29,953 nucleotides of DNA from positions 1 through 29,953 of the forward strand of contig NIVC01003756.1 of NCBI GenBank assembly GCA_002269645.1. The letters run 5' to 3'. The translations under genes and the position numbers were made by a program. The DNA is from Macrostomum lignano (Eukaryota). Shown here piece after piece: positions 1 to 29,953 of this stretch (its first letter is position 1; each line of letters begins with the position of its first letter). Under the pieces are notes generated by a model. It was not told where the DNA came from, did not search any database, and worked only from the letters and a program-made list of their open reading frames with translations.

Positions 1-99
1 CGGGCTCCTCACATTCGATGTACAGCCGGAAGCGGCTGAGCAAGCTGCGCAATTCGGGTCGGACACCCAGTAGCTCCCGTTTCAATCCATAGACGACAG
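1..99 (-). CDS. MCMDC2: MCMDC2-like continuation carrying the MCM arginine-finger motif (different frame from exon 4; gene probably runs off the window)
   Basis: Frame starting at 100 reads AVVYGLKRELLGVRPELRSLLSRFRLYIECEEP. LLSRFRL (SRF at 37-29) matches the MCM LLSRFDL motif, and IECEE resembles INCNE of MCMDC2. It is preceded by a CAG at 102-100. Confidence 0.65.
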
Positions 100-137
100 C
101 TGATCGTCAACGTCGGCTTGATCGTTGCCATAGCAAC

Positions 138-369
138 CATCGGCTTCCGGCGCCACTCGACGACCGCAGGCGGCTCGTTCAAGCAGGCCGAGAATGCCGC
201 AGAGCAGCGCGCGGTCCGAGCGGACAACGGGCGGGTTGGGCGCTGCGGCCATTCCGGCCTCCATAGCCCAGGCCAAGCTGTGCAGGTCCGGAGTTCGCAT
301 CCCCGCCAGATAAGGGAACACGGCCAAGTTGCCGGGACCGGCCAGGGCGAGAGTGCCCGCTTCCGCTGC
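138..369 (-). CDS. MCMDC2: MCMDC2-like exon 4 (3' boundary uncertain; without splicing the frame stops at 82)
   Basis: Pyrimidine tract plus GACAG acceptor at 370, phase 0. AEAGTLALAGPGNLAVF...DLHSLAWAMEAG resembles IQAGSALLAKGGICFIG...KLEQLQTVLESR. The Walker B position is degenerate. Confidence 0.7.
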
Positions 370-480
370 CTGTCGGATGGGAGGTGAAAATAATTACAAT
401 AGCTGCGTAATGCCTACTCTTGGGAATTTGAGATTGGGTGGAAATTCGATTCTTCAAAATTGACAATAAATCAGATTTCT

Positions 481-690
481 AATAAATGGCAGTCCATTCC
501 TAGAAACATGACAATAAATGGCAGTCCATTCCTGGAAACATGGCAATAAATGGCAGTCCATTCCTGGAAACATGGCAATAAATGGCAGTCCATTCCTAGA
601 AACATGGCAATAAATGGCAGTCCATTCCTAGAAACATGGCAATAAATGGCAGTCCATTCCTAGAAACATGACAATAAATGACAGTCCACA
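481..690. repeat. 32-bp minisatellite (about 6.5 copies) in MCMDC2 intron 3
   Basis: Unit AATAAATGGCAGTCCATTCCTAGAAACATGGC read directly; period 32 (481, 513, ...). Confidence 0.95.
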
Positions 691-783
691 ATTTTTTCCT
701 AAGGATATAAGAATAGCCAAAAAAAATCATATTCCTACAAACATTCAAAAGTTCAGTAATTTTTCTGATTATCCCTGCCTCAC

Positions 784-1138
784 CTGGGCGGCGGGCCCCC
801 ACCAGGGCAGCTTGGCGGCCAGAGCGGCGGCAACCGGCACGCCGCTACGGTGAACGACGCAGGCGTCGCCAAGAGCGGCGGTCAGAGACTGCAACAGGCA
901 ATGTACCGAATTATAATCGCCAGGCGACATAATGCATAGCGACACTGGTCGCAGTCTCTCCGCTTCATCAACGCAATTGTATTGATCGTCGCCTACAGCG
1001 GCCAGCAGTTGCATCAGGATGGCGAGTTTGACGGTCATCCAGGAGCCCGGGGGGCTGGCGTCAGCGCACAGGTAGAAGGCCGCATGCAGGGCGGCGCCGT
1101 ACCGACTGCCCGACAGGTCGTCTTGAATGTGCAGCGGC
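784..1138 (-). CDS. MCMDC2: MCMDC2-like exon 3 (start of degenerate AAA+ domain)
   Basis: CTTACAG acceptor at 1139 (phase 2) and CAG|GTGAGG donor at 783 (phase 0). ASPPGSWMTVKLAILMQLL resembles ITPPGTYNLLKLCLLMSLV. The Walker A position reads VSLCIMSPGDYNS and lacks GK[ST]. Confidence 0.8.
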
Positions 1139-1339
1139 CTGTAAGTAGTGGGTGCGGTAAATGGGGTTGGGATGGGTCTTGGAAGCAAGCGAGAGTTGGA
1201 GAAACTAATTTACTATGAGAATTATACTGGCTTATTACAGTAGCCAGTGAGATTCATTTTTAATCTCCCGATGGGATCACAGTATCCCTGTTATGTTATG
1301 TTAAACTGAAACGGAAGCACGAGAATTGACTGCAGACGA

Positions 1340-1700
1340 TTTAGGTTAGGTTGGGGTTATGGTTTAGGTTAAGTTGGGGTTTAGGTTAGGGTTTGGGTAG
1401 GGTTGGGGTTATGGATTACGTCAGGTTGTGGGTCAGGGTTTAGGTTAGGTTAGGGTTTTGGTTTAGTCTTAGATTAGGGTTTATGTTTAGGGTTAGGGTT
1501 TAGGCTAGGTAGGGTTTTGGTTTAGGGTTTAGGTTTAGGGCTTAGGGTTTAGGTTTAGGGTTCAGGTTTAGGGTTCAGGTTTAGGCTTTAGGCTAGATTA
1601 GGGTTTAGGTCTAGGGTTAGGGTTTACGCTGGGTTAGGGTTTAGATTAGGGTTTAGACTAGGTTCGGGTTAGTTTAGGGTTAGATTTAGGATTAGGTTCG
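1340..1700 (+). repeat. Degenerate telomere-like (TTAGGG/TTTAGGG/TTTAGG) array in MCMDC2 intron 2
   Basis: Many TTAGGG and TTTAGG(G) variants on the + strand. Bracketed by inverted repeats CACGAGAATTGACTGC (1318-1333) and GCAGTCAACTCGTG (1701-1714). Confidence 0.85.
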
Positions 1701-1786
1701 GCAGTCAACTCGTGGCAGTCAAATTGTGACTAGTCAATTATCATAGATCCAACTGGAACACCCCAATTCAACTCTCTCAGACTCAC

Positions 1787-2184
1787 CTGACATCAGGCCC
1801 GTCCATTAGCTCACTCAGCACCGGTTCGCAGTCGACAATCTCAAAATGGCAGCCCTGGCCGACAGCGTCCGCCACTGGCAGGCCGATGAGGCGGCAACGC
1901 CGGCCAAGCGCCAGCTGCCTAATCAGCCGGTTGCCAATAGCAACGCATCGGATTGGACGGCGAATGCCAGAACTGGCCGGCTGGTTAGGCAGGGCGATGG
2001 CCAGCAGTCGCGGCGACTGCACCCGGCCGGCGGCAATTTCGGACATGACCGAGCCGCAAGCCGGACAGGGAACGCTGGGCGCACCAGATGTGGACTCGGG
2101 CATTGATATGGCGGTTGCTAAGGCGTATCCAGGGCGACGCTGCAGCATCAGGGAGCTGCAGCCGCCGCTGGCGTCTTTACTATG

Positions 2185-2220
<36 letters not shown>

Positions 2221-2314
2221 TTTGGCATCAGCGTCATTGTTTTCGTTGCAGTCGTCGTTCTTCCGGACCAGAGCCACTGGACATTGCGGATCGCGGCACT
2301 CAAATCGAATGGCT
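1787..2314 (-). CDS. MCMDC2: MCMDC2-like exon 2 (zinc-finger/OB-fold region)
   Basis: TTGCAG acceptor at 2315 (phase 2) and AG|GTGAGT donor at 1786 (phase 2); 528 nt. AIRFECRDPQCP resembles GARFLCSDEACP, CPACGSVMSE resembles CNLCASSLQE, and RQLALGRRCRLIGLP resembles NKMNIGNEYKIIGIP of MCMDC2. Confidence 0.8.
2183..2220. repeat. (ATC)n trinucleotide run encoding poly-Asp inside MCMDC2 exon 2
   Basis: A GATCATCATC... run on + translates as a run of about 11 D in the minus-strand frame. Confidence 0.9.
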
Positions 2315-2346
2315 CTGCAATGCGCGAGTTTCAATGCTTTTAGACT

Positions 2347-2826
2347 GCTGAATCGGCTTCTATAGGGTGCTGAATTGGCTTCTATAGGGTGCTGAATTGG
2401 CTTCTATAGGGTGCTGAATTGGCTTCTATAGGGTGCTGAATTGGCTTCTATAGGGTGCTGAATTGGCTTCTATAGGGTATTGAACTGGCTTCTATAGGGT
2501 ATTGAATTGGCTTCTATAGGGTGCTGAATTGGCTTCTATAGGGTATTGAATTGGCTTCTATAGGGTGCTGAATTGGCTTCTATAGGGTGCTGAATCGGCT
2601 TCTATAGGGTATTGAATTGGCTTCTATAGGGTGCTGAATTGGCTTCTATAGGGTGATGAATTGGCTTCTATAGGGTGCTGAATTGGCTTCTATAGGGTGC
2701 TGAATTGGCTTCTATAGGGTGATGAATTGGCTTCTATAGGGTGCTGAATTGGCTTCTATAGGGTGCTGAATTGGCTTCTATAGGGTGATGAATTGGCTTT
2801 ATAGGGTGCTGAATTGGCTTCTATAA
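2347..2826. repeat. 22-bp minisatellite (about 22 copies) filling MCMDC2 intron 1
   Basis: Unit GCTGAATTGGCTTCTATAGGGT repeated with few substitutions. Confidence 0.97.
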
Positions 2827-2877
2827 GGTGAGAATAAGCAAATCGCAATGAGAACCGCCCCCACCCCGCAGACATAC

Positions 2878-3341
2878 CTATCGCACAGCGCCGTCTCATC
2901 AACGCAGACAATCTGACAGTCGAGGCAGCTCAACCGGCAAGCCGAGTGCGCATCTGTTTAGCGCTGGCAACCCGGCTGCGGCGCCGGGAAACTGAAAGAT
3001 TCTGGGCAGAACCAGCAGTTGGCCGGCAGCGGGCTGCGGCCTATGCTGGCTGTGGTAGCTGAGCAGAGCAGACTGGCAATAGCGTCAATACAGCCAGCAA
3101 AGTCTGTTATAAACAGTTGGGCCAGCATCGGCTGAGACTCGGCAAGCAGAGGAAAATCGATGGGTACGCAGACTTCCTTTAGAATCTCGTCCGAGTGGCA
3201 GCGCTCGCACAGGCGGTCAATATCGTCAAGTAGGTCTTGCAAAGTGCCGGCGTAATCAAAGTAAAGCAGCCAGGACTCCTGCTCTTCGGTTTCAGATTCA
3301 GAATCGATGTCGAAATTGAGGGAATCTGGAGATGCGGACAT
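2878..3341 (-). CDS. MCMDC2: MCMDC2-like (MCM domain-containing protein 2) exon 1; contains an in-frame TAA at 2958-2960
   Basis: ATG at 3341. LLYFDYAGTLQDLLDD resembles the human MCMDC2 N-terminus LIYLDRSGGLQKFIDD (recalled). The frame continues past the TAA (TDAHSACRLSCLDCQIVCVDETALCD) to an AG|GTATGT donor at 2877, phase 2, matching the next acceptor. Confidence 0.75.
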
Positions 3342-8480: not shown

Positions 8481-9138
8481 TTCAGTAGCTACATGAACTA
8501 GACCCACCTCTAAGTCCTTCAGTAGCTACTAGACCCACCTCAAAGTCCTTCAGTAGCTACTAGACCCACCTCTCAAAGTCCTTCAGTAGCTACTAGACCC
8601 ACCTCAAAGTCCTTCAGTAGCTACTAGACCCACCTCTCAAAGTCCTTCAGTAGCTACTAGACCCACCTCAAAGTCCTTCAGTAGCTACTAGACCCACCTC
8701 TCAAAGTCCTTCAGTAGCTACTAGACCCACCTCAAAGTCCTTCAGTAGCTACTAGACCCACCTCTCAAAGTCCTTCAGTAGCTACTAGACCCACCTCAAA
8801 GTCCTTCAGTAGCTACTAGACCCACCTCTCAAAGTCCTTCAGTAGCTACTAGACCCACCTCAAAGTCCTTCAGTAGCTACTAGACCCACCTCTACTAGTC
8901 CTTCAGTAGCTACTAGACCCACCTCAAAGTCCTTCAGTAACTACTAGACCCACCTCTGAAAGTCCTTCAGTAGCTACTAGACCCACCTCAAAGTCCTTCA
9001 GTAGCTACTAGACCCACCTCTCAAAGTCCTTCAGTAGCTACTAGACCCACCTCAAAGTCCTTCAGTAGCTACTAGACCCACCTCTCAAAGTCCTTCAGTA
9101 GCTACTAGACCCACCTCTGAGTCCTTCAGTAGCTACTA
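8481..9138. repeat. 31/33-bp alternating minisatellite (about 20 monomers; 64-bp dimer)
   Basis: Unit CTACTAGACCCACCTC(TC)AAAGTCCTTCAGTAG; periods alternate 31 and 33 (8521, 8552, 8585...). Confidence 0.97.
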
Positions 9139-9979
9139 AGAACATCCTCAGTAATCCTTTAGAAGCCTACCATCCCTAGCCTTCCTAACATGGCTACCTA
9201 CGAGTACTTGCATCAATAGACAATATGTTTATTCCGCAGAAGGCGGAGATAAACAAGTAAAAAATGACTAGAGCAAACAGTTAGGGATGCTGTGTTGAGA
9301 GCTCTAATGGAAAAAATTGGAATGCAAGCTTTTGGCTTGGCAACATTGATTAGGCGTCGGTCAGCGGCTCAGTCTATCTCTTATCCTCTGCTCCTGCCAG
9401 AGACTTTTCTGGTTTCTGCGCAGTCATTCCGTAGCGTCGATATTCGGTTTTCTGGATATACTCGTATGCCTGTTAACAAGAGATTGGGAACTGTGTGCAT
9501 GCAGGAGAGGAGGAAGAGAGTAAGGACTAATACATGGATTTATGGGAAGAAATGAAGTCAGCCGCCTTGAGCCGAGGGATTTCTCCAAGAAAGAAGAGCT
9601 GAGGCTTGCCATAGTTGGTTGGTAGTTCAGGCGCCGCCTTCTGCTTGGTCTGGGTCTGCTATTCTACAGCTCATTCATCTAATTCCTAATAAGAAAACTA
9701 AATTGCCGCCTTCTAGGATGGGTTATTTGATGCTGCTTAATAACTGCTTTTTATTGCTGTCAGGAAAATAGTTCGTTGCTTGCCTCGTTCGTAGACGAGT
9801 GCCCAAAATTTATTACCGTAATAGCTGCGTTTATAGGACTTTTTGGGAACAGTTTATTAAAAATTTTCATCCAAATATAAATCATTTATTGACTTTTCTT
9901 CAATTTATGCTTAGTCTGAAAAATCTAAACCGTAGCATAGACTTACTGCTTTAAAAAACTGTGCCTGGTCCCCAATCGA

Positions 9980-11340
9980 TGCTGAGAATGGTCCCTAATC
10001 AATCCTGAGAATGGTCCCTAACCAATCCCGAGAATGGTCCCTAATCAATCCCGAGAATGGTCCCTAGTAAATCCAAGAATGGTCCCTAACCAATCCTGAG
10101 AATGGTCCCTAATCAATCCTAAGAATGGTCCCTAATCAATCCTGAGAATGGTCCCTAACCAATCCCGAGAATGGTCCCTAATCAATCCCGAGAATGGTCC
10201 CTAGTAAATCCCAAGAATGGTCCCTAACCAATCCTGAGAATGGTCCCTAATCAATCCTAAGAATGGTCCCTAATCAATCCTGAGAATGGTCCCTAACCAA
10301 TCCCGAGAATGGTCCCTAATCAATCCCGAGAATGGTCCCTAGTAAATCCCAAGAATGGTCCCTAACCAATCCTGAGAATGGTCCCTAATCAATCCTAAGA
10401 ATGGTCCCTAATCAATCCTGAGAATAGTCATTAATCAATCCTGAGAATGGTCCCTAATCAATCCCGAGAATGGTCCGCTAATAAATCCCAAGAATGGTCC
10501 CTAACCAATCCTGAGAATGGTCCCTAATCAATACCCGAGAATGGTCCCTAATCAATCTTGAGAATGGTCCCTAGTAAATCCCAAGAATGGTCCCTAACCA
10601 ATCCTGGGAATGGTCCCTAATCAATCCTAAGAATGGTCCCTAATCAATCCTGAGAATAGTCATTAATCAATCCTGAGAATGGTCCCTAATCAATCCCGAG
10701 AATGGTCCGCTAATAAATCCCAAGAATGGTCCCTAACCAATCCTGAGAATGGTCCCTAATCAATACCCGAGAATGGTCCCTAATCAATCTTGAGAATGGT
10801 CCCTAATCAATCCCAAGAATGGTCCCTAACCAATCCTGAGAATGGTCCCTAATCAATCCCCGAGAATGGTCCCTAACCAATCCCGAGAATGGTCCCTAAT
10901 CAATACCCGAGAATGGTCCCTAATTAATCCAGAGTATGGTCCCTAATCAATCCCGAGAATGGTCCCTAATCAATCCCAAGAATGGTCCCTAATAAATCCC
11001 AAGAATGGTCCCTAACCAATCCTGAGAATGGTCCCTAATCAATACCCGAAAATGGTCCCTAATCAATACCCGAAAATGGTCCCTAAAAAATCCCGAGAAT
11101 GGTCCCTAACCAATCCTGAGAATGGTCCCTAATCAATCCTGAGAATGGTCCCTAATCAATCCTGGGAATGGTCCCTAATCAATCCTGGGAATGGTCCATA
11201 ATCAATCCTGAGAATGGTCCCTAATCAATCCTAGGAATGGTCCCTAATCAATCCTGAGAATGGTCCCTAATCAATCCTAGGAATGGTCCCTAATCAATCC
11301 TGGGAATGGTCCATAATCAATCCCGAGATGGGTCCCTAAC
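9980..11340. repeat. 23-bp minisatellite (about 59 copies) with higher-order blocks
   Basis: Unit GAGAATGGTCCCTAATCAATCCT. The TAGTAA variant recurs at 10065, 10202 and 10340; the AATAGTCATT variant recurs at 10423 and 10655. Confidence 0.97.
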
Positions 11341-11854: not shown

Positions 11855-13056
11855 GTGAGTTTTAGTTAAGCTACTATACCAAGCCTACATGCAGTATTGA
11901 ACTGATACAATCTGAATAAAAGTGCAACCTACAATCTGCCTTTATCAGCCCCGGTAGTGGCTTATCAAGGACGCCAGAAAGTTTTGGTTGATAAATTATT
12001 AATGTATATAAAGCCCCGTGGCTGTCTTAGATCTTGTTTTCAAAAACTGAAACTTGGGTCAATGTTTTTTCGAGAATTTTTTGTCAGACATAGAGATAAA
12101 TCCGTCTTGTAACTGTATGTATGGTATTTTTATACGATAAATTAAAGACGGCCTTACGGTTTTGGCATCTGTTCTGCCGGGCTTAACCGCCTAGGTGAGC
12201 ACACCAAGTAAAAAGAGTTATGCGCTGGCAGCTTGGAGTATGCCTGTCTAATATGCCTAGGTGAAACAGAGGTCGCTACTGTTCTGTAGGGCCTCACTCC
12301 TCCATTGTCACCTCAGCCTATCAAGCTGGGAAAGTTCAGTAGGCTTTTTTGTTTCCTATTGCCTCTCTCCCAGCGAGCCAAGTCCTTCAAATGAGTCACA
12401 CTCACACATCAGGCATTGAGCTTAGCAAAGAGAAAATTATAAAGAGGTGAAAGCAATTTGGAGTAGATTTTGACACAGACTAGTTTACAATACCTAAATA
12501 CAGTGTATGCTTATAGTGAATCCAAATACGAGTAGTTCTCTCTGTTGGCATTATATTTTGAAAGCTTTTAGCTCAGCAACAAATGTAGTGACTTTTTTCT
12601 CTGCATTCCTCTCTTCCCTAACGAGATGTTGAAGCAGTTTCGGCTTTTGCGCCCGCGGTGATGAAGTAAAATTAGGGAAGCTGAGAGAGAGGATTTTTAG
12701 GAGGCTGGAGTGTGTCTACAGCGGGCTGAGGATTTCCATTGCCCCATCAGACGGTGTCAATGAATCGCCTCGTTTGTCTCCACCTCCCGCATCTGCGTCT
12801 AGGAACCAAATATCTTAGGGGTTGAGGGCTACTTTTCTACGAAAATAGCTCGTCAGTTGGTCGGCTTAGTTATCCCCGGCCGGGGCCTTGATTGCAGCTG
12901 CGCCTTCTCTCGCCGCTGCAGCCACTCCACCTCTGTCTCTGTCAGGGCCCAGCTTAAACTGGCAACGGTGGCTTTTGGAATTTCTGGGATTAGGCAATAA
13001 CTGATAAGCTGTCACTAGCGGATAGTGCTTCTGTGTGAAATGCTGGCTTTTGTGGC

Positions 13057-13143
<87 letters not shown>

Positions 13144-13213
13144 CACTAAGACAGACAGACCGGACAGACAGACAGAGAGACGGGCAGGCAGACAGACAGA
13201 AGGACAGACAGAC

Positions 13214-13246
<33 letters not shown>

Positions 13247-13342
13247 GAGACGATCAGGCAGACAGACAGACAGAAGACAGAGAGACGGGCAGGCAGACAG
13301 ACAGACAGACTGACAGACAGACAGACAGGCAGGCAGGCAGGC

Positions 13343-13406
<64 letters not shown>

Positions 13407-13500
13407 CGACAGACAGACAGACAGACAGACAGACTGACAGACAGACAGAGAGACGGGCAGGCAGACAGACTGACAGACAGACAGACAGGCAGGCAGACAG
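13057..13500. repeat. Compound microsatellite (AGAT)21 followed by degenerate (AGAC/AGGC)n
   Basis: Perfect AGAT run 13057-13140, then an AGAC-rich tract to about 13500. Confidence 0.98.
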
Positions 13501-14015
13501 ATACGGAATGCCGCACCAAAACTGCATAGGTCAGTTTATCCAGTGAGCTTAGCGCTATAACGATGATTGAAATAGTGTGCAGTGGGGATTATGGGTCTAT
13601 TAGTAGGGGGAAGCGAGCGAGAGTGGCGGAGTGAGAGTAAGTGCGCGTGCTCAGGAATTAATACGATGAGGCCCGGGCCGCAATTCCTGGCTTCAGGAGA
13701 GTGAGTTAGATAAGCAAATAGCGGGTGGAGCAGCCATTCTGTGGAGAGCTTCGCGAATGAAGCGCTCTCGCTCTCCTAACTTTGAACCCTTAATCCCCAC
13801 TCGTCGAAGCCTTCAATCTCCCTATTATATCTGTATAGCTAGCGCCAAGAGTAGCGTCCTACATTTTTTCTATATAGCTTGACCTGTGTGCCAACCGCAT
13901 CCCTTTCCAACTCAATCCTGGGTTAGTTCTATTTATTCACTTTTTTGGGAGCAAAATGTATATTTTCTATTTGCTTTCCTTTTTGGACTATTTAGACTAT
14001 TTAGACTACTATTTA

Positions 14016-15502
14016 GGCCAATTTAGATAGTGCTTTAGTTACTGGCCAATTTAGACAGTGCTTTAGTTACTGGCCAATTTAGACAGTGCTTCAGTTACTG
14101 GCCAATTTAGACAGTGCTTCAGATACTGGCCAATTTAGACAGTGCTTTAGATACTGGCCAATTTAGACAGTGCTTTAGATACTGGCCAATTTAGACAGTG
14201 CTTTAGATACTGGCCAATTTAGACAGTGCTTTAGATACTGGCCAATTTAGACAGCTGCTTTAGTTGGTGGCCAATTTAGTCAGTGCTTCAGATACTGGCC
14301 AATTTAGACAGTGCTTTAGATACTGGCCAATTTAGACAGTGCTTTAGATACTGGCCAATTTAGACAGTGCTTTAGATACTGGCCAATTTAGACAGTGTTT
14401 TAGTTACTGGCCAATTTAGACAGTGTTTTAGTTACTGGCCAATCTAGACAGTGCTTTAGTTACTGGCCAATCTAGACAGTGCTTTAGTTACTGGCCAATC
14501 TAGACAGTGCTTTAGTTACTGGCCAATTTAGACAGTGCTTTAGTTACTGGCCAATTTAGACAGTGCTTTAGTTACTGGCCAATTTAGACAGTGCTTTAGC
14601 TACTGGCCAATTTAGACAGTGCTTTAGTTACTGGCCAATTTAGACAGTGCTTCAGATACTGGCCAATTTAGACAGTGCTTTAGTTACTGGCCAATTTAGA
14701 CAGTGCTTTAGATACTGGCCAATTTAGACAGTGCTTTAGATACTGGCCAATTTAGACAGTGCTTTAGATACTGGCCAATTTAGACAGTGCTTTAGTTACT
14801 GGCCAATTTAGACAGTGCTTTAGTTACTGGCCAATTTAGACAGTGCTTTAGTTACTGGCCAATCTAGACAGTGCTTTAGATACTGGCCAATTTAGACAGT
14901 GCTTTAGTTACTGGCCAATTAAGACAGTGCTTTAGATACTGGCCAATTTAGACAGTGCTTTAGATACTGGCCAATTTAGACAGTGCTTTAGTTACTGGCC
15001 AATTTAGACAGTGCTTTAGATACTGGCCAATTTAGACAGTGCTTTAGATACTGGCCAATTTAGACAGCTGCTTTAGTTGGTGGCCAATTTAGTCAGTGCT
15101 TCAGATACTGGCCAATTTAGACAGTGCTTTAGATACTGGCCAATTTAGACAGTGCTTTAGATACTGGCCAATTTAGACAGTGCTTTAGATACTGGCCAAT
15201 TTAGACAGTGTTTTAGTTACTGGCCAATTTAGACAGTGTTTTAGTTACTGGCCAATCTAGACAGTGCTTTAGTTACTGGCCAATCTAGACAGTGCTTTAG
15301 TTACTGGCCAATCTAGACAGTGCTTTAGTTACTGGCCAATTTAGACAGTGCTTTAGTTACTGGCCAATTTAGACAGTGCTTTAGTTACTGGCCAATTTAG
15401 ACAGTGCTTTAGCTACTGGCCAATTTAGACAGTGCTTTAGCTACTGGCCAATTTAGACAGTGCTTTAGCTACTGGCCAATTTAGACAGTGCTTTAGTTAC
15501 TG
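14016..15502. repeat. 28-bp minisatellite (about 53 copies) with an internal 813-bp block duplication
   Basis: Unit ACTGGCCAATTTAGACAGTGCTTTAGTT. A rare variant ACAGCTGCTTTAGTTGGTGG occurs at 14251 and 15064, each followed by the same order of variants. Confidence 0.97.
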
Positions 15503-15550
15503 AGCAATTAACAGGTCAAACTTAGCATTTTAATCTCTAGCAAATTGCAG

Positions 15551-16063
15551 TGCGGCTCATTCTGTTTGTCTCTGTCCAAGCCTCCGATCCCCAACCAATC
15601 AAAACGCCACTCAGGTCCAAGCCGGACAGACTGCCAGCCGACATGCTCGCCGACTCCAGCGCCGGTTTTCGCCTGACCGTCACGTCGGTGGGCATTCCGG
15701 ACGCCAAGACTCGCGCCTGTCCAGCTACAAAGACTTCTACAAAAGCTTTGGCGCCGTCGTCTTTGTCCTCCCCAGCGGCGTCGGCTCCGACTGATAGCGG
15801 CGCCGGCGCTGGCGCGAATCTGCTAGGCGCCGATGAAGTGGAACAGCTGCGTCGCTGCACGTTCCGTCGGGCCGCGCCGCCTCCGATGCCGCCGCACTCC
15901 TTGCCAATGTCGGCTATTGATGGCGGCGCGCCCGCAGCCGGGTCGGCGACATCCGCAGCGCTGATGCCGCTGACTACGTGGTGCCTGCCGGTCGAGGCTC
16001 TGTGCGACGGATTGGCGAACTGCCCGGACTCCACAGATGAGCAACCGATCTGCCGGCGGGATG
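15551..16063 (+). CDS. Exon with CUB C-terminal strand and LDL-receptor class A module
   Basis: TGCAG acceptor at 15550 (alternative TAG at 15540). SSAGFRLTVTSV is CUB-end-like. WCLPVEALCDGLANCPDSTDEQPIC matches the LDLa C-terminal half. G|GTGAGC donor at 16064, phase 1. Confidence 0.8.
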
Positions 16064-16171
16064 GTGAGCTGAAGTTCATTTTAAATAAGCTACTGCAGAA
16101 AGGAAATAAAACCTACTACAATTTCTAGTAGTATATAAGGCGTATAGCTAGCATTTTTATCCGAATTCCAG

Positions 16172-16962
16172 TATCTTTAATGTCCCGCCTGCTCTCGCTT
16201 GGCGTTGCCGCGTCGGTTGCTATGGGCGTAGGCGCAGTCGCTCTGAGCATGGGCTGCGTGCTCGGCCTCGCCTGCTGCTGCTATCGAGCGCTGAGCTCTG
16301 AGCCGCCGCCGAACACTGCCAGCGCCGTCCCCAATGCCGCCATGACAACGCTGCATCATTCGCCTGGACAGGCTCAGCATCTTCTGCAACTGCAGCATCA
16401 GCAGCGCCTGCTCCTGCCGGCCCGTCAGAGCCCGTCAGTTGGGCTCCGACGCCCGCCGCCAGAAGCGGCGTCCTACGCGGGGAATTCTTCCCATTATTCG
16501 CTGGCGGACAGCAGCGGGGGCGGCAGGTATTATCAGCAGCAGCAGCAGCAGCAGCAAAAGCCACCTGTCAGCTACCAGCAGCAGCAGCAGCGGGCCTACA
16601 ACAGCACAGAGCAGCTGTTTGGCTATGGCAACCATGTGTACCATCAGCAGCAGCAGCATCCGCATAGTCACTATCATCAGCATCCGCAGGCCCAGTGCCG
16701 CCTGTGCCAGCACCATCCGCCGCCTGCCAGCCATCACGGCGGCTTCAGCGGCGGCGCCGGCGGCAGTCGCACCCCGACTAGTTCAAGGAGCGCCAAAAGC
16801 GGTCGCAGCGGCCGAAGCTCCTACGGGCCCGGACACCAAATTCGGCCGGTGCCGCCGCCGTCTAGAGCGGACTCAGAGACTGGAACCGGCCATCATCATC
16901 AGCAGCAGCAGCAGCCTGGCAATGGGTCTCGCGATCGCATTGTCTATCCTGTACAGTTATGA
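16172..16962 (+). CDS. Terminal exon: transmembrane helix plus Gln/His/Gly-rich cytoplasmic tail
   Basis: TTCCAG acceptor at 16171, phase 1, joins in frame with the LDLa exon. Hydrophobic LLSLGVAASVAMGVGAVALSMGCVLGLACCCYR, poly-Q runs, TGA at 16960-16962. Confidence 0.8.
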
Positions 16963-18482: not shown

Positions 18483-19034
18483 TTATAGCGGCACATGCGA
18501 GAACAGATAAGAGACGCTCTCGCCATTATGCGTGCGCCTGATAGCTTCGCCAAGCATCATGCTGACGTCGATGCACTGAATCTTGGAACAGTTGCGCATG
18601 TTGTTCTCCTGCGAGATTGTATTAGTGACTACTACAGCTTCGAAAATGCTTCGATTAATACGATCGATAGCCGCCCCGCTGAGAATGCCGTGCACACAGA
18701 TGGCGTACACCCTGGAGGCGCCGGCCTCCTGCAGCTTCTCGGCCGCGTGACAAATTGTGCCGCACGTGTCCGCCATGTCGTCAACTAGGATGGCCACTTT
18801 ATCCTTCACGTCGCCTACCAGGACCATCCGGTCAACCTCGTTCGCCTTCTTGCGCTCCTTGTGAATCAGGGCGAACTCCACTTTGAGCCGTTCGGCTACG
18901 GAGGTGACCCGTTTTGCGCCGCCAGCGTCTGGGCTAACGATGACAGAGTCCTGCCAGCCGGCCACGTTCTCCATGATCCACTTGATCACGGCTGGCTCCG
19001 CGTACAGATTGTCCACCGGGATGTCGAAGAAGCC
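18483..19034 (-). CDS. PRPS1: Ribose-phosphate pyrophosphokinase (class I PRPP synthetase) exon 3
   Basis: CACAG acceptor at 19035, phase 0. [14 protein letters not shown]...[10 protein letters not shown]...[11 protein letters not shown]...[12 protein letters not shown]-stop is nearly identical to animal PRPS1/2; paralog assignment is not possible. Confidence 0.97.
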
Positions 19035-19049
19035 CTGTGGTGGGGGTGG

Positions 19050-19680
19050 CAGTAGGGCACCGTGAATGGGTGTGGGGTATCTCCAGCACCGTGAATGGGT
19101 GTGGGGTAGCGGGGTATCTCCAGCACCGTGAATGGGTGTGGGGTAGCGGGGTATTTCCAGTCACTGACGCCACCGTGAATGGGTGTGGGGTAGCGGGGTA
19201 TTTCCAGTCACTGACGCCACCGTGAATGGGTGTGGGGTAGCGGGGTATTTCCAGTCACCGACGCCACCGTGAATGGGTGTGGGGTAGCGGGGTATTTCCA
19301 GTCACCGATGCCACCGTGAATGGGTGTGGGGTAGCGGGGTATTTCCAGTCACTGACGCCACCGTGAATGGGTGTGGGGTAGCGGGGTATTTCCAGTCACC
19401 GACGCCACCGTGAATGGGTGTGGGGTAGCGGGGTATTTCCAGTCACCGATGCCACCGTGAATGGGTGTGGGGTAGCGGGGTATCTCCAGTCACCGACGCC
19501 ACCGTGAATGGGTGTGGGGTAGCGGGGTATCTCCAGTCACCGACGCCACCGTGAATGGGTGTGGGGTAGCGGGTTATTTCCAGTCACCGACGCCACCGTG
19601 AATGGGTGTGGGGTAGCGGGGTATTTCCAGTCACCGACGCCACCGTGAATGGGTGTGGGGTAGCGGGGCAGTTCAGCCAC
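19050..19680. repeat. 47-bp G-rich minisatellite (about 11 full plus 3 truncated copies) in PRPS intron 2
   Basis: Unit GCCACCGTGAATGGGTGTGGGGTAGCGGGGTATTTCCAGTCACTGAC; period 47 (19169, 19216...). Confidence 0.97.
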
Positions 19681-19708
19681 TGTAAACGGAAGGGAAGTCG
19701 AATTATCA

Positions 19709-20077
<369 letters not shown>

Positions 20078-25035: not shown

Positions 25036-25216
25036 TGCAGGAACGTCCTTGATACGCATCCAATTTTTATGATCCTCTCTAAATAAGCTCGTTTCTACAA
25101 AAATGGTGGAATAAATAGTCAATAAAATTACAAGCCTTATCTGTCCACCATTTTTGTAGAAACGAGCTTCTTTAGAGGATCATAAAAATTGGATACGTAT
25201 CAAGAACGTTCCTGCA
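25036..25216. mobile_element. 181-bp hairpin element (about 75-bp inverted arms), probable MITE
   Basis: 25036-25110 and 25144-25216 are near-perfect reverse complements with a 33-nt spacer; no TSD found. Confidence 0.6.
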
Positions 25217-25277: not shown

Positions 25278-26180
25278 ATGATGGAGCAGATTCGGGCCCA
25301 AGGCGAAGCCGAGGACGAACTGCGTAAGTTTTTTATGCATATACTAGAAGAAGATGTTAACAGCCTTGTAAACGTATAGTGATGACGATTCTTAATTTAG
25401 TTTGCATCTGCCTCGCAACTCCTCCCTCATTTTTATGTACTTCTTCAATAGGCCATCAATTGAGCGGAGTTCGTGAAAAGCTGGGGGAAGCTCAAGCTGA
25501 AAATCGTCAGCTGCAAGCTTAAGTTCATCGGTTGAAGGCTGTCTCCGCTACGTCGTGCTCGTCGGAATCCGACACGACCGTGGCGAGAAGTTATGCGGTG
25601 CACGTTCTGGGTCGCGTCGCAAAGCGGTAGGAACAATCGCTTGGGCTCATCAATGAAGTGTGCAGCACTCTGGGCGGTTCCGATATGCGCCCTGCAGATG
25701 AAAACGGTCCGGATTCGCACGATGAGTGAGTGCGACCGTCGGGCTCCACAATTAGACCCCAGCGCATCCTCCGCATTATTCATCCAAGGGCGTATTAGCA
25801 CCGGTCAAACCAAGCAACTGCACCGCAGTATGCACTAGGTTTTGGCTGTGCATTCGTCGAACGCAAAGCAAGGCAAGTCTGGAGTCATTATTTGTTGCGA
25901 CACTGATCCAGCTTTCAAAGATGTCTTGGTGAGCATGCGCTACCGGCTATAGAAGCGCTGGCCGTAAAAAACCGTGGACCCACAAAGAAGATGGTGCAGG
26001 CGGATGAAAACTTCATTCGTTTGGACCATTCTGTGAGTCGTTTTCTCCGTTGAGGAGTTTAAAAACTCGAGCGTCTCCGGTCGTTGCAGCTCGCATGGCG
26101 AAGCTGAACAAGTCCGTGCAGCTAACACCGATAAACTGCATGGAGACTATCCATGGTTACTGCAAGCACGTTTACGTATA
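25278..26180 (+). pseudogene. Decayed intron-containing coiled-coil + BEN-domain gene
   Basis: MMEQIRAQGEAEDEL, phase-1 GTAAGT...TAG intron (25324-25451), then coiled coil VREKLGEAQAENRQLQA*VHRLK. Later TSFVWTIL*VVFSVEEFKNSSVSGR...TDKLH (about 26010-26140) resembles the BEN consensus FxxxLLxxxFxxEELxxSSxxG. Stops at 25520, 25628, 25836 and 26034 plus a frame change. Confidence 0.5.
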
Positions 26181-27499
26181 TAGCGAGCTGTATAGCGAGT
26201 GATCCGCCCAACGGGTGCATTTAGGGGTAGGCGATGGGGATCCCTGAAGAGTATCCAATGTTGCGATAGTATTTAATGGACGTACATTAAGGTATATCAA
26301 GCCGTATATAAATATACCGTAAGTAGGATCAAAGTCGACCTGCCCATCTGGGTGTCATTGAGAAGGCCAGAAAAGCGATTGATAGCGTTTTGTTTCGGAA
26401 AGTGAAATATAAAATTTACAGTTTTGTACAAGTGAATTTAATATTTCTCTTCGAGGACGGCTAAATCAAATTTGTAGTCGTGAAAAATTGGAACAATGAG
26501 CCGTTCTTAATAATTTTATGCTACGTAATAAGCACAGGATTTGGCTGCAGGGATCCGGTTCAGTCACCCAGAATTCATTCGGAACTGTCACCCGAATTTT
26601 TATAGAGATACTTTTTTATGCTTTTAGTACTGCTACTGTACAATATACGCAGTCGCCTTGCTGCCGAGAGCCTTCTTTTATCGGCCTGAACAGCTACATC
26701 GATAATTTGGATATCTGTTCATATTCATTTACTCAAAAGATACAACACCTACTAAATACACTGCAGGTGTCGGCTAACACTAAATCACTTAATTAGCCTT
26801 CTAGCTACTCGACCTGGATTTATTCATCATCGGAGGATTAAATTGAAAAAGGTTTTGTGCTAATCTTCTATTAGTATAATCTGTCTCAAATTTTCGGTAT
26901 TACATTATATTTTGAGCGAGTGACCTTACAGCTAGCTGCTTGTACATGTCTGACTGAATCGAGTGTGTAAACAATTTTTTCCAAGCTCAATGCGGAGATT
27001 TTATTGTGAATTAATTAACAGAAACAGAAGATAGGTCTACACCTGTCATATAAAAGCAGCCGATTCTCTACATGGTCGTGATGCTTCTGCAAATTACGAG
27101 AAAATGCCGACAGATGCTCGTCATTTTAGCGTTGCTAGCAAGAACTGTATGAAATAGATTTTCGTGGGAAAATCAATCAGTTCTTTTTGCGATCACGAAC
27201 ACTTACTCGATCAAAGATTTAATTGTAGCTGCTGTGGGGATTTTTCCCACAAGCAATTGTAAATGTTTTCTTGTCTCTTTAAAAATCTTCTTTTCGAACC
27301 GATGAAATGATACTATGATACAAATGTGCACTTGCACTTCACCATTGGCCGTCCGCTCAGATACGACCCACCTTCCGGCTCAGTCTGGCAGCCGACATTG
27401 ACTGCAAGGGTGCGGGGGGACTTCAATCTGGCAACTGCGACAGCACTGACCTCAGGCCGGAGTTCGTGCTTCTGAGCTTTGCCTGCTTCTGAAAATTGT

Positions 27500-27930
27500 C
27501 TGAAACTTCGACTGGAATCCTGGGATGGTGGAGCAGGTCGGGCAGTCAAAGTACAAGTAGTCAGCCTGGAAACGCGGTTTCTTGCTAAGAAGGTCGGTGT
27601 TAACACGAGAAGCTCCGGGACAGTGGATCACCTTGAAATTGTATTCTGCCATGCGCTTCGTTGTTTACCGGTCCGAATTCAATGCACTTATATTTTCAGT
27701 CGTTGCCCCAGCGCTAATTTATTTTTCTGCGTCCCTGAACAGCAAGTTTCCGGCTCTGTTGGGGCTCGCCGGCCTCGACTTGTCTCGTTAATTAAAAAAA
27801 AGCCTACGACTATGCTATGCTCAACTGATAACGGCCTTCAACTTAACGCAGAGTATTAGCGCAGAAACACAACAATGCTCTGCAGCATCTGCACGAGCCC
27901 AAGTAGCTTCATCGTAAAACAGTAGTCGTC
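27500..27930 (-). mobile_element. Degenerate Ty3/Gypsy pol fragment (RNase H C-terminus and linker)
   Basis: RMAEYNFKVIHCPGASRVNTDLLSKKP...CPTC resembles LxEYDFxIxHRPGxxNxxADxLSR(RP)C..C; upstream YCFTMKLLGLVQML is RNase H-like; in-frame stops present. Confidence 0.6.
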
Positions 27931-28389
27931 GCTGCGTCGACTGTTTTAATTCGCAGTGACGAGCCCTGTAGTTGCAGGCGTACGTGCCAGAAACTTTGCC
28001 TCTGAGGGCCGTATATTTAACTTACAGTATGTATGGGCTACCTGCCGATGTGCAACTTTATGTTGCGTAATCAATATATAGGCCCCGTGCACGGTGGGGA
28101 GAGGGCAAGGAAAAGTGCAAAGGTAGCTTGTACACTAAATCTCTTCCCCACGCGAGAAAAAAACCACGAACTTACAAGTAATGAATAACAATTTTGACTT
28201 GATTGTTGTGTCTCTTGAATCACGAAAAAAGGGAAAAAACAAAGACAAAATATAGCGGTCGTTACAGCGCAAAATGAGAGTTACAGGCGCCTGGTCAAAC
28301 TCGGGTCACTGTAATTGTGCCGTCACTGGCTGTGCCTGTCGCACTAGCGGTCTGTCAGGCCCGTGATCGCCTTCCGAATACAGGTCGTC

Positions 28390-29070
28390 CAACTCCCAGG
28401 GGCATGACTCAAAGCGGCTTCATGTTCCGCCGCATGGCAGCTACGTCACACTGCAGCGTCATTGCATCGCCATCGACAGCTTTGACGACCCAAAGGCCGT
28501 GGGGTCGAACGGACAACTCAGCGTGGCCTTTTCCGCGGTCTCTGAGCATCACCGTGTGTCACAATACCGTGTTGCTGAAGCTGGTTCCCGAGGCGGCCTA
28601 GCTGCTTTGTAGGACCGGTGGGCAGGATGTCACTGATGTCTCTGTTGAGCACGAAGTTATTAAATGGATGTTTGGTGCCCCGTGGCACTGAGTTGCGGTA
28701 TCCGAGCAGCCTTCTATCGTGGCGGCATTGACAGTCTACGGTTGAAGCGCTCCACCTCGACGTTCGCTGCCGGGTTAGAGAGGGTTGACTCCGTGATGTT
28801 GAACTCCAAGGCCGTCGATCAGAAACTCCTGGAATCGTCGCTCGTAAGGTAAGGTCGGTTTGTCCGTGGCGAGCTGCTGCGGCTCACCGAATCGGTTGAA
28901 GGAGGCCATATACATGTAGCACAGTTGATGACGCTAGTGAGGCTGCGCACCACGTTAAAGTCTGGGGTAGCTGCTGAAGTATTCTAGACCACCAAGACCA
29001 CATTTGTAGGGAACGGCCCGCAGGCGCTCAGCAAAGTTGACGGTAGTCAAAGTTGAGCATGATAGTGAAA
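28390..29070 (-). mobile_element. Degenerate Ty3/Gypsy integrase fragment
   Basis: FNRFGEPQQLATDK...FQEFL...GVQH, a frameshift, then PAANVEVERFNRRL, matching the rve core FARFGxPxxLxSDN...F..FL..GV.H...P.SNG.VERFNRTL. A PFDPTAF...MRRN C-terminal remnant follows. Confidence 0.75.
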
Positions 29071-29953
29071 TTTCCAAGTGCAGAGATTCTATAAACCAGT
29101 TTAAGCCGGTTTTGCAGACTTGTGACTTGCAATTGGTTGTAACCCAAAATATTAGTACAGAGTCAAGTAAAGTATAGAGACTTAACTGACTGCCGAGTTG
29201 TCTGGATTTGTCTGACGCGCTTGCTCTGTGTGAAGTGCTCTCTTACACTGGCGGATCTTTCACTTTAGCGTCTCGGTGGGACCTCCAGAAATATATGTAG
29301 TGTGTAGCGAGTCCGATATGTTTACTTTGTGAAGGTGGTTAGGGTGCAGTTTCAGTAGTAGTATCTGATCCACGTCACGGCTGCCACACGGTTACAGGAA
29401 AAAAGACAAAAATCTACATGTAATCAAACAAATTTACCAAACACGATAAATAAAATACGCTAGAGAAATAGCATCCCTTGGTAGTGCTTCTTTGGTTTAT
29501 TTTTTTACTTATTATATCTGCAGTTCTTTTAAAACGACAGAATGCGCAGGGCACAGGTATGAATTCAATCCCAGCTCAGCCAGAAACGAAGCGAGACAGC
29601 TTGAGCAGTCCGGAGAGTCCAGCAGCAGTGATGCCGCATCAGTCTTATGGCTGCGGCTTCCTTTTACTAGCAGTCTTATACAGGGGCACAAGATGATTGA
29701 CGCCGCCCAACTTTCCTGTAGATCATAATTCTATCTCAGGCAAATTACAGGTATGAACGCGATGAAATTATACACGGCTCGTATCTGTTTCTGACATTTT
29801 TCTGCACAAAATAACCAAGAATTGTTTTGAGAAGCAGACTTTTTTTTTTACTTTTGTGACTTATCATTTTAAATCTATTCACTGAGGCCTAAGCTGTTTT
29901 AATCTGTGTAGTAGTAAAGTCTCAATCCAAAAACGGCTTAGTTCAAAAAGGTA

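Follow-up and report, generated by a model that had tools for sequence, protein, structure and literature searches.

A contig of Macrostomum lignano (29,953 nucleotides [nt]; NIVC01003756.1 of assembly GCA_002269645.1), analyzed at its full length and called the window below, carries at one end an MCM-like gene (minus strand, positions 1 to 3341) whose reading frame is broken twice, by an in-frame TAA and by a probable change of frame. The first-pass annotation had proposed that both breaks are removed by micro-introns of 38 to 39 nt with weak GTT donors, perhaps regulated by retention, and had kept a recent pseudogene or allele and an assembly error as fallbacks. Both segments read as translated sequence, as ordinary exon rather than introns, and the evidence favors the fallbacks over the micro-introns. 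With a chance that we put slightly above even, the locus is a damaged gene copy in a duplicated genome, either a very young unprocessed pseudogene or a null allele.

The features from which the micro-introns had been proposed were all recovered. The open reading frames (ORFs) of the exons join in phase across three long introns of 563, 648, and 414 nt (Table 1), and the TAA is present in exon 1 at 2960..2958. Excision of the 39-nt segment 2992..2954 (GTTTCC..AAACAG; candidate 1) deletes this codon and keeps the frame, and excision of the 38-nt segment 137..100 (GTTGCT..GATCAG; candidate 2) links exon 4 to the frame ..SLLSRFRLYIECEEP. With both segments taken out, a single frame stays open over at least 546 codons. 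Since about 546 codons are open in sequence of 60% GC, the MCM-like locus is a coding gene, now or until recently.

The two segments were compared with the exons and with six introns verified by phase or homology (three in the MCM-like gene, two in a PRPS gene, and one in a gene with an LDLa-like motif). Exon GC content ranges from 0.53 to 0.70 and that of the three long introns of the MCM-like gene from 0.37 to 0.44; the values for candidates 1 and 2, 0.69 and 0.53, are exon-like, and the small LDLa gene intron has 0.33. Codon usage was scored with a log-odds table built from the confident coding sequence of the window, with reference windows of equal length giving 0.59 ± 0.32 for in-frame coding sequence, 0.07 ± 0.40 for off-frame sequence, and -0.58 ± 0.34 for introns. 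Read in the upstream frame, candidate 1 (SFPAPQPGCQR*T) scored 0.48, the 34th percentile of coding windows, and candidate 2 (GCYGNDQADVDDQ) scored 0.83, the 77th percentile. Both values exceed those of ~100% of the intron windows and, for candidate 2, the upstream frame is strongly preferred over the other two frames.

The splice signals led to the same result. The donors of the six verified introns match CAG/GTRAGT at 7, 9, 8, 7, 8, and 9 of nine positions, versus 2 of 9 for candidate 1 (TCA/GTTTCC, the GT alone) and 5 of 9 for candidate 2 (ATG/GTTGCT). The exons of the MCM-like gene contain 59 GT..AG pairs of 30 to 50 nt, and the donors of these decoys are at least as good as that of candidate 1 in 59 cases out of 59 and at least as good as that of candidate 2 in ten. 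Because decoy donors are equal or better, a spliceosome accepting signals of the candidates' grade would cut the exons elsewhere too. Pyrimidine content between positions -23 and -4 is 0.45 in both candidates versus 0.50 to 0.75 in the verified introns (at least 0.65 in five of the six), and no pyrimidine tract was found in this interval at the 3' end of either candidate. In candidate 1, the branch-like CTAAA lies merely 4 to 6 nt before the AG. By four independent criteria (composition, codon usage, donors, and 3' ends), the segments are thus unlike introns, and they were judged to be exon for these reasons; the proposal of weak-donor micro-introns, with or without regulated retention, is left unsupported.

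The rate at which short GT..AG segments rescue a frame by chance was determined by planting a TAA or a 1-nt deletion at 799 positions, that is, at every codon of the confident coding sequence of the window (the MCM-like gene, PRPS, and the LDLa gene). A bare GT..AG segment of 30 to 50 nt removed the planted TAA in frame at 51% of the positions and repaired the planted deletion at 84%; for segments of 35 to 45 nt, the rates were 36% and 65%, respectively. The actual breaks also offer several solutions. Six stop-free in-frame GT..AG options of at most 150 nt span the TAA (18, 39, 84, 120, 135, and 138 nt), and the frame break has twelve GT..AG options, including a second one of 38 nt (111..74) and one of 65 nt (164..100). 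GT and AG ends are non-specific, as the 59 pairs present in the exons indicate. Because planted lesions are rescued so often, two rescuing segments of similar length would be expected, post hoc, with a chance of roughly one in four to one in two. Frame rescue, which had been offered as evidence for introns, therefore performs no better than chance. The observation is real as sequence and is not special.

The gene had been described as MCMDC2-like. Its likeness to MCM proteins stood at the level of motifs, and database searches lent it no support. A local hidden Markov model (HMM) of AAA+ cores was built from eight archaeal plasmid MCM genes, which were retrieved with an MCM2-like probe used for this purpose alone. 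The C-terminal half of the protein gave a weak score against this profile (4.3 bits), which was above those of 2000 out of 2000 composition-matched shuffles, with an alignment that is collinear across 120 residues; hhalign against the MCM cores returned a P value of 0.004 with a probability of a mere 8.5%. In this weak alignment, VKLAILMQLL would correspond to the pre-Walker helix, LCIMSPGDYNS to the P-loop with its lysine replaced (PGDYNS versus PGxxKS), EAGTLALAGPG to the MCM-typical EAGALVLAD, AVFPYL to Walker B with loss of the acidic pair (versus CIDEFD), and LAWAMEA to AMEQQ. From these correspondences, it is plausible that the AAA+ domain derives from an MCM and that its ATPase motifs are dead. 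MCMDC2 and the fly Mei-MCM proteins (MEI-217 and MEI-218) are MCM paralogs with inactive ATPase motifs and a role in meiotic recombination (PMC5070785; bioRxiv 10.1101/080887). If the marginally significant alignment is right, the gene would resemble them in its weak collinear MCM AAA+ core, in the loss of the Walker A lysine and of the Walker B acidic pair, and in the retention of SRF; unlike them, it has no Pfam MCM, PDB, or homolog match.

Specifically, Pfam contained no family matching the whole protein at an E value of ≤1 or the C-terminal half at ≤10, and a PDB sequence search retrieved no chain at ≤10; in exon 2, the Pfam and PDB sequence searches produced two sub-threshold zinc-ribbon hints. 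The spliced protein, submitted with and without its poly-Asp run, had no homologs at an E value of ≤10 among 5.8 billion clustered proteins (8000 candidates listed), a search in which distant relatives may have been swamped. Exon 3 alone, compared by HMMER with 1.84 billion representative proteins, retrieved a single repeat protein, which was spurious; its AlphaFold single-sequence model was too poor for use (predicted local distance difference test score [pLDDT], 57.6), and Foldseek found no match to it in the PDB below an E value of 2. We found no literature linking Macrostomum with MCMDC2. A metagenome scan returned one match, on contig Ga0335085_10053761 (735-809), where 25 residues are 60% identical to the zinc-ribbon segment of exon 2 that includes CPACGSVM; this match is most likely due to chance, from an unrelated zinc-ribbon protein.

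A switch of frame had been placed near position 100. A second open frame with SLLSRFRL is indeed present, and codon statistics choose neither frame. The old and the new frames are both stop-free from the TGA at 84..82 to position 1, and their codon scores past the TGA, 0.09 and -0.01, both fall between the coding and the off-frame distributions; in a scan based on these statistics, the signal was too small to locate the switch or to select a frame after the TGA. SLLSRFRL aligns over eight residues to allsrFDL, the arginine-finger motif of MCMs, and the tail beyond this 8-mer gave no significant profile match. It is from the SLLSRFRL match that we infer the frame switch, which is likely real. 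If so, the break lies between about 110 and 85. Because the upstream frame codes well over 138..85 and the downstream frame carries a TGA at about 113-111, being open from about 110, the loss or gain of one base accounts for the break no less well than an intron does. The distance between LAWAMEAG and SRF is 59 residues in the 38-nt model, 50 in the 65-nt model, and 72 in the single-indel model versus 47 in real MCMs, a spacing that is suggestive of the 65-nt model without being decisive.

In the reading that we prefer, a fast-evolving MCM-family-like gene with degenerate ATPase motifs, in which the 38- to 39-nt segments are ordinary exon, would have been disabled by two lesions. The first would be the nonsense TAA, which one C>T substitution in CAA could have produced, for example. 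The second would be a frameshift by one or two bases in the interval from about 110 to 85, after which the ORF would end at the TGA at 84-82, shortly before the arginine-finger motif. Decay of a redundant copy or of a null allele would have no cost, as is possible because duplication is extensive in the published M. lignano assembly: 180 Mb consist of duplicated, non-repetitive blocks with ≥95% identity, which come from the extra chromosomes of the sequenced line (PMC5730564), and the species has been described as a hidden polyploid (PMC10468722). The decay would have to be very recent, since the splice sites are intact and the 1.6-kb ORF is otherwise open. The PRPS and LDLa genes contribute another ~2.9 kb of coding sequence to the window, with 0 stops and 0 frameshifts; because this neighboring sequence is clean, the lesions appear concentrated in the MCM-like gene rather than scattered as random consensus errors. 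The lesions would be expected in the DNA and not in the consensus, with an intact copy elsewhere in the genome. The locus shares several traits with duplicated genes that have become unprocessed pseudogenes or null alleles: the exon-intron structure is kept, the lesions are few, and the host genome is duplicated. Unlike the situation for documented duplicate pseudogenes, the redundancy is here deduced from the literature, and the two lesions could be a sequencing artefact.

Several observations weigh against a disabled copy. The lesions number just two, the splice sites and phase of the three canonical introns are perfectly preserved, and the ORF is otherwise open. A pseudogene at this locus would be extremely young, and the gene may be functional. 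Both breaks are removable by GT..AG segments of nearly equal length (38 to 39 nt), close to the 36- to 37-nt microintron mode of parasitic flatworms. The intact copy is presumptive, as is the reality of the lesions in the DNA, and the frame switch is based on a motif of eight residues.

An assembly or polishing artefact, in which the TAA, the frame break, or both would be consensus errors or paralog variants imported by short-read mapping and the real gene would be intact at both places, is the main rival, an unlikely explanation that nonetheless deserves serious attention. The published assembly was obtained with Canu from error-prone PacBio reads and polished by Pilon with Illumina DNA and RNA-seq data, in a genome with 180 to 312 Mb of near-identical duplication (PMC5730564). 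The second break requires no more than one base lost or gained between about 110 and 85, and the remaining ORF and every splice site are intact. The clean 2.9 kb of neighboring coding sequence argues against this explanation, as do the lack, at 110-85, of a homopolymer, where long-read indel errors usually concentrate, and the fact that a stop-creating substitution is an uncommon consensus error.

We consider it quite unlikely that the two segments are real micro-introns, spliced despite their GTT donors to give a full-length protein, perhaps in an exitron-like manner with removal in the germ line. The GT..AG ends, the nearly equal lengths, the single frame of at least 546 codons produced by joint removal, and the otherwise intact look of the gene are in favor of it. 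So is the existence of a suitable length class: flatworm microintrons are <75 nt, with modes near 37 and 90 nt, and have been reported in M. lignano also, the mode in parasitic flatworms being 36 to 37 nt (PMC6530080). Lengths of 39 and 38 nt fit this class, as do the GT..AG ends and the phylum. The same survey found that the splice sites of flatworm microintrons are nearer to the consensus than those of other introns (PMC6530080), unlike the candidates, which have donors matching at two and five positions, exon-like GC content, and in-frame codon usage. The donors fall short of the 7 to 9 matches of the verified introns and compete with 59 decoy pairs in the same exons, pyrimidine tracts are lacking, CTAAA lies just 4 to 6 nt from the AG of candidate 1, and rescue occurs at chance level. 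By comparison, the verified intron of smallest size in the window (108 nt) has a GTGAGC donor and is rich in AT.

Exon-like composition and weak sites are also traits of exitrons, which Marquez et al. reportedly described in 2015 as introns inside coding exons with these two properties. By definition, exitrons have no internal stops and keep the frame on retention. The candidates resemble exitrons in their location inside a coding exon, their GC content, and their weak sites, and the length of candidate 1 is a multiple of three (39 nt). Unlike exitrons, candidate 1 holds the TAA, and candidate 2, of 38 nt, breaks the frame when retained. An exitron-like switch with retention by default, in which the germ line would make the MCM-like protein only when both GTT-donor segments are removed, by means of splice signals far weaker than those of the verified introns nearby, is very improbable.

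We also assign little probability to the absence of a frame switch, whereby the TGA at 84-82 would be a second nonsense codon or the true stop of a protein shortened at its C terminus, or to a second break caused by an intron bounded elsewhere, for instance the 65-nt option 164..100. Both frames are open past the TGA, with codon means that do not discriminate between them, and SLLSRFRL, which is followed by a tail devoid of significant profile matches, could be an ancestral remnant or a coincidence. The 65-nt option would leave 50 residues between AMEAG and SRF, the value nearest to that of real MCMs. Conversely, SLLSRF.L occurs at the place expected for the arginine finger, after collinear Walker A, Walker B, and AMEAG motifs, and the donor of the 65-nt option (GCG/GTCGTC) matches at 3 of 9 positions. 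A change of genetic code, which the first-pass annotation had already thought unlikely, was rejected because the highly conserved PRPS ORF of the same window ends in TAA. Bypass of the TAA by trans-splicing of a spliced leader to the AG at 2954 was likewise rejected: translation from the ATG at 2953 would be in another frame and would meet a stop in fewer than nine codons.

Real micro-introns would mean that a flatworm spliceosome can use very short GC-rich introns whose donors have hardly any complementarity to U1, and the locus would exemplify a gene gated by a pair of them. In GC-rich exons, nearly any stop or frameshift can be explained by a short GT..AG segment; calls of short introns made without junction reads are therefore unsafe, for predictors and human readers alike. 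Slightly damaged gene copies in the duplicated genome of M. lignano complicate knock-out and expression work. Given a full-length intact copy, the gene, for an MCM-like protein that lacks detectable homologs and has dead ATPase motifs, may be of interest for the evolution of Mei-MCM and MCMDC2 proteins.

Table 1. Features of the MCM-like gene and exons of the PRPS gene
Feature	Position	Strand	Description
Exon 1	3341..2878	-	Start ATG 3341; open apart from a single TAA
Candidate micro-intron 1	2992..2954 (39 nt)	-	GTTTCC..CTAAACAG; judged exon sequence
In-frame TAA (first ORF break)	2960..2958	-	Codon context CAG CGC TAA ACA GAT
Intron 1	2877..2315 (563 nt)	-	GTATGT..TTGCAG; occupied by 22 copies of a 22-bp minisatellite (2346-2830)
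Exon 2	2314..1787	-	Cys-rich zinc-ribbon-like motifs CRDPQC and CPACG; poly-Asp run
(GAT)12 perfect microsatellite within exon 2	2185..2220	-	Codes for 12 Asp
Intron 2	1786..1139 (648 nt)	-	GTGAGT..TTACAG; degenerate telomere-like TTAGGG/TTTAGGG array (1340-1698)
Exon 3	1138..784	-	First half of MCM-like AAA+ domain (putative); Walker A position SPGDYNS (907-927), lysine lost
Intron 3	783..370 (414 nt)	-	GTGAGG..CGACAG; 32-bp minisatellite, 6.5 copies (481-688)
Exon 4, upstream frame	369..82	-	Stop TGA 84..82; EAGTLALAGPG (331-363), Walker B position AVFPYL, LAWAMEAG
Candidate micro-intron 2	137..100 (38 nt)	-	GTTGCT..TTGACGATCAG; upstream frame reads GCYGNDQADVDDQ; judged exon sequence
Second open frame	110..1	-	..AVVYGLKRELLGVRPELRSLLSRFRLYIECEEP, runs off the window edge; SLLSRFRL at 23-46
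PRPS exons	23720-23601, about 20041-19745, 19037-18486	-	True exons; match vertebrate PRPS1 without the minisatellite

The (GAT)12 tract of exon 2 is perfect, which suggests a recent expansion and possibly a relaxed constraint on this gene copy.

The last exon of the PRPS gene (18483-19016, minus strand) is 99% identical to an M. lignano protein in UniRef. By tblastn, exon sequence is identical to the UniRef M. lignano entry throughout, and the differences are confined to a 47-bp intronic minisatellite. These matches place the window in M. lignano, in line with the mention of flatworms in the first-pass annotation. UniRef entry A0A1I8IDB1 (M. lignano PRPS) translates part of this minisatellite, which lies in PRPS intron 2 (19038-19744); judging from the exon matches, that segment of the entry is a database mis-annotation. 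PRPS is represented by two UniRef entries in one 90% cluster, which fit genome duplication. The LDLa gene (15550-16962, plus strand) has two exons; its product combines a Cys motif like that of LDL-receptor class A (CLPVEALCDGLANCPDSTDEQPIC) with a predicted membrane helix and a tail rich in Gln and His. Its intron (16064-16171) is 108 nt long, with GTGAGC..TTCCAG ends and a GC content of 0.33.

Long, regular minisatellites occupy introns and intergenic DNA at 481-688, 1340-1698, 2346-2830, 8497-9138, 9966-11339, 13056-13501, 14016-15509, and 19124-19668. Their periods and copy numbers include 22 bp by 22, 32 bp by 6.5, 64 bp by 10, 23 bp by 59, 28 bp by 53, 47 bp by 11.6, and (CAGA)112, in keeping with the 15% tandem-repeat content of the M. 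lignano genome (PMC5730564). A near-perfect inverted repeat at 25036-25216, with nested arms of 43 nt (95%) and 34 nt (97%) and a 33-nt loop, would form a hairpin of ~180 nt; it may be an element resembling a miniature inverted-repeat transposable element or a hairpin RNA locus, and an Rfam scan of the window detected no RNA family, at the hairpin or elsewhere. The region 25300-29300 has moderately GC-rich stretches, lacks a clear gene, and carries numerous short, broken ORFs on either strand; it looks like decayed remnants of mobile elements.

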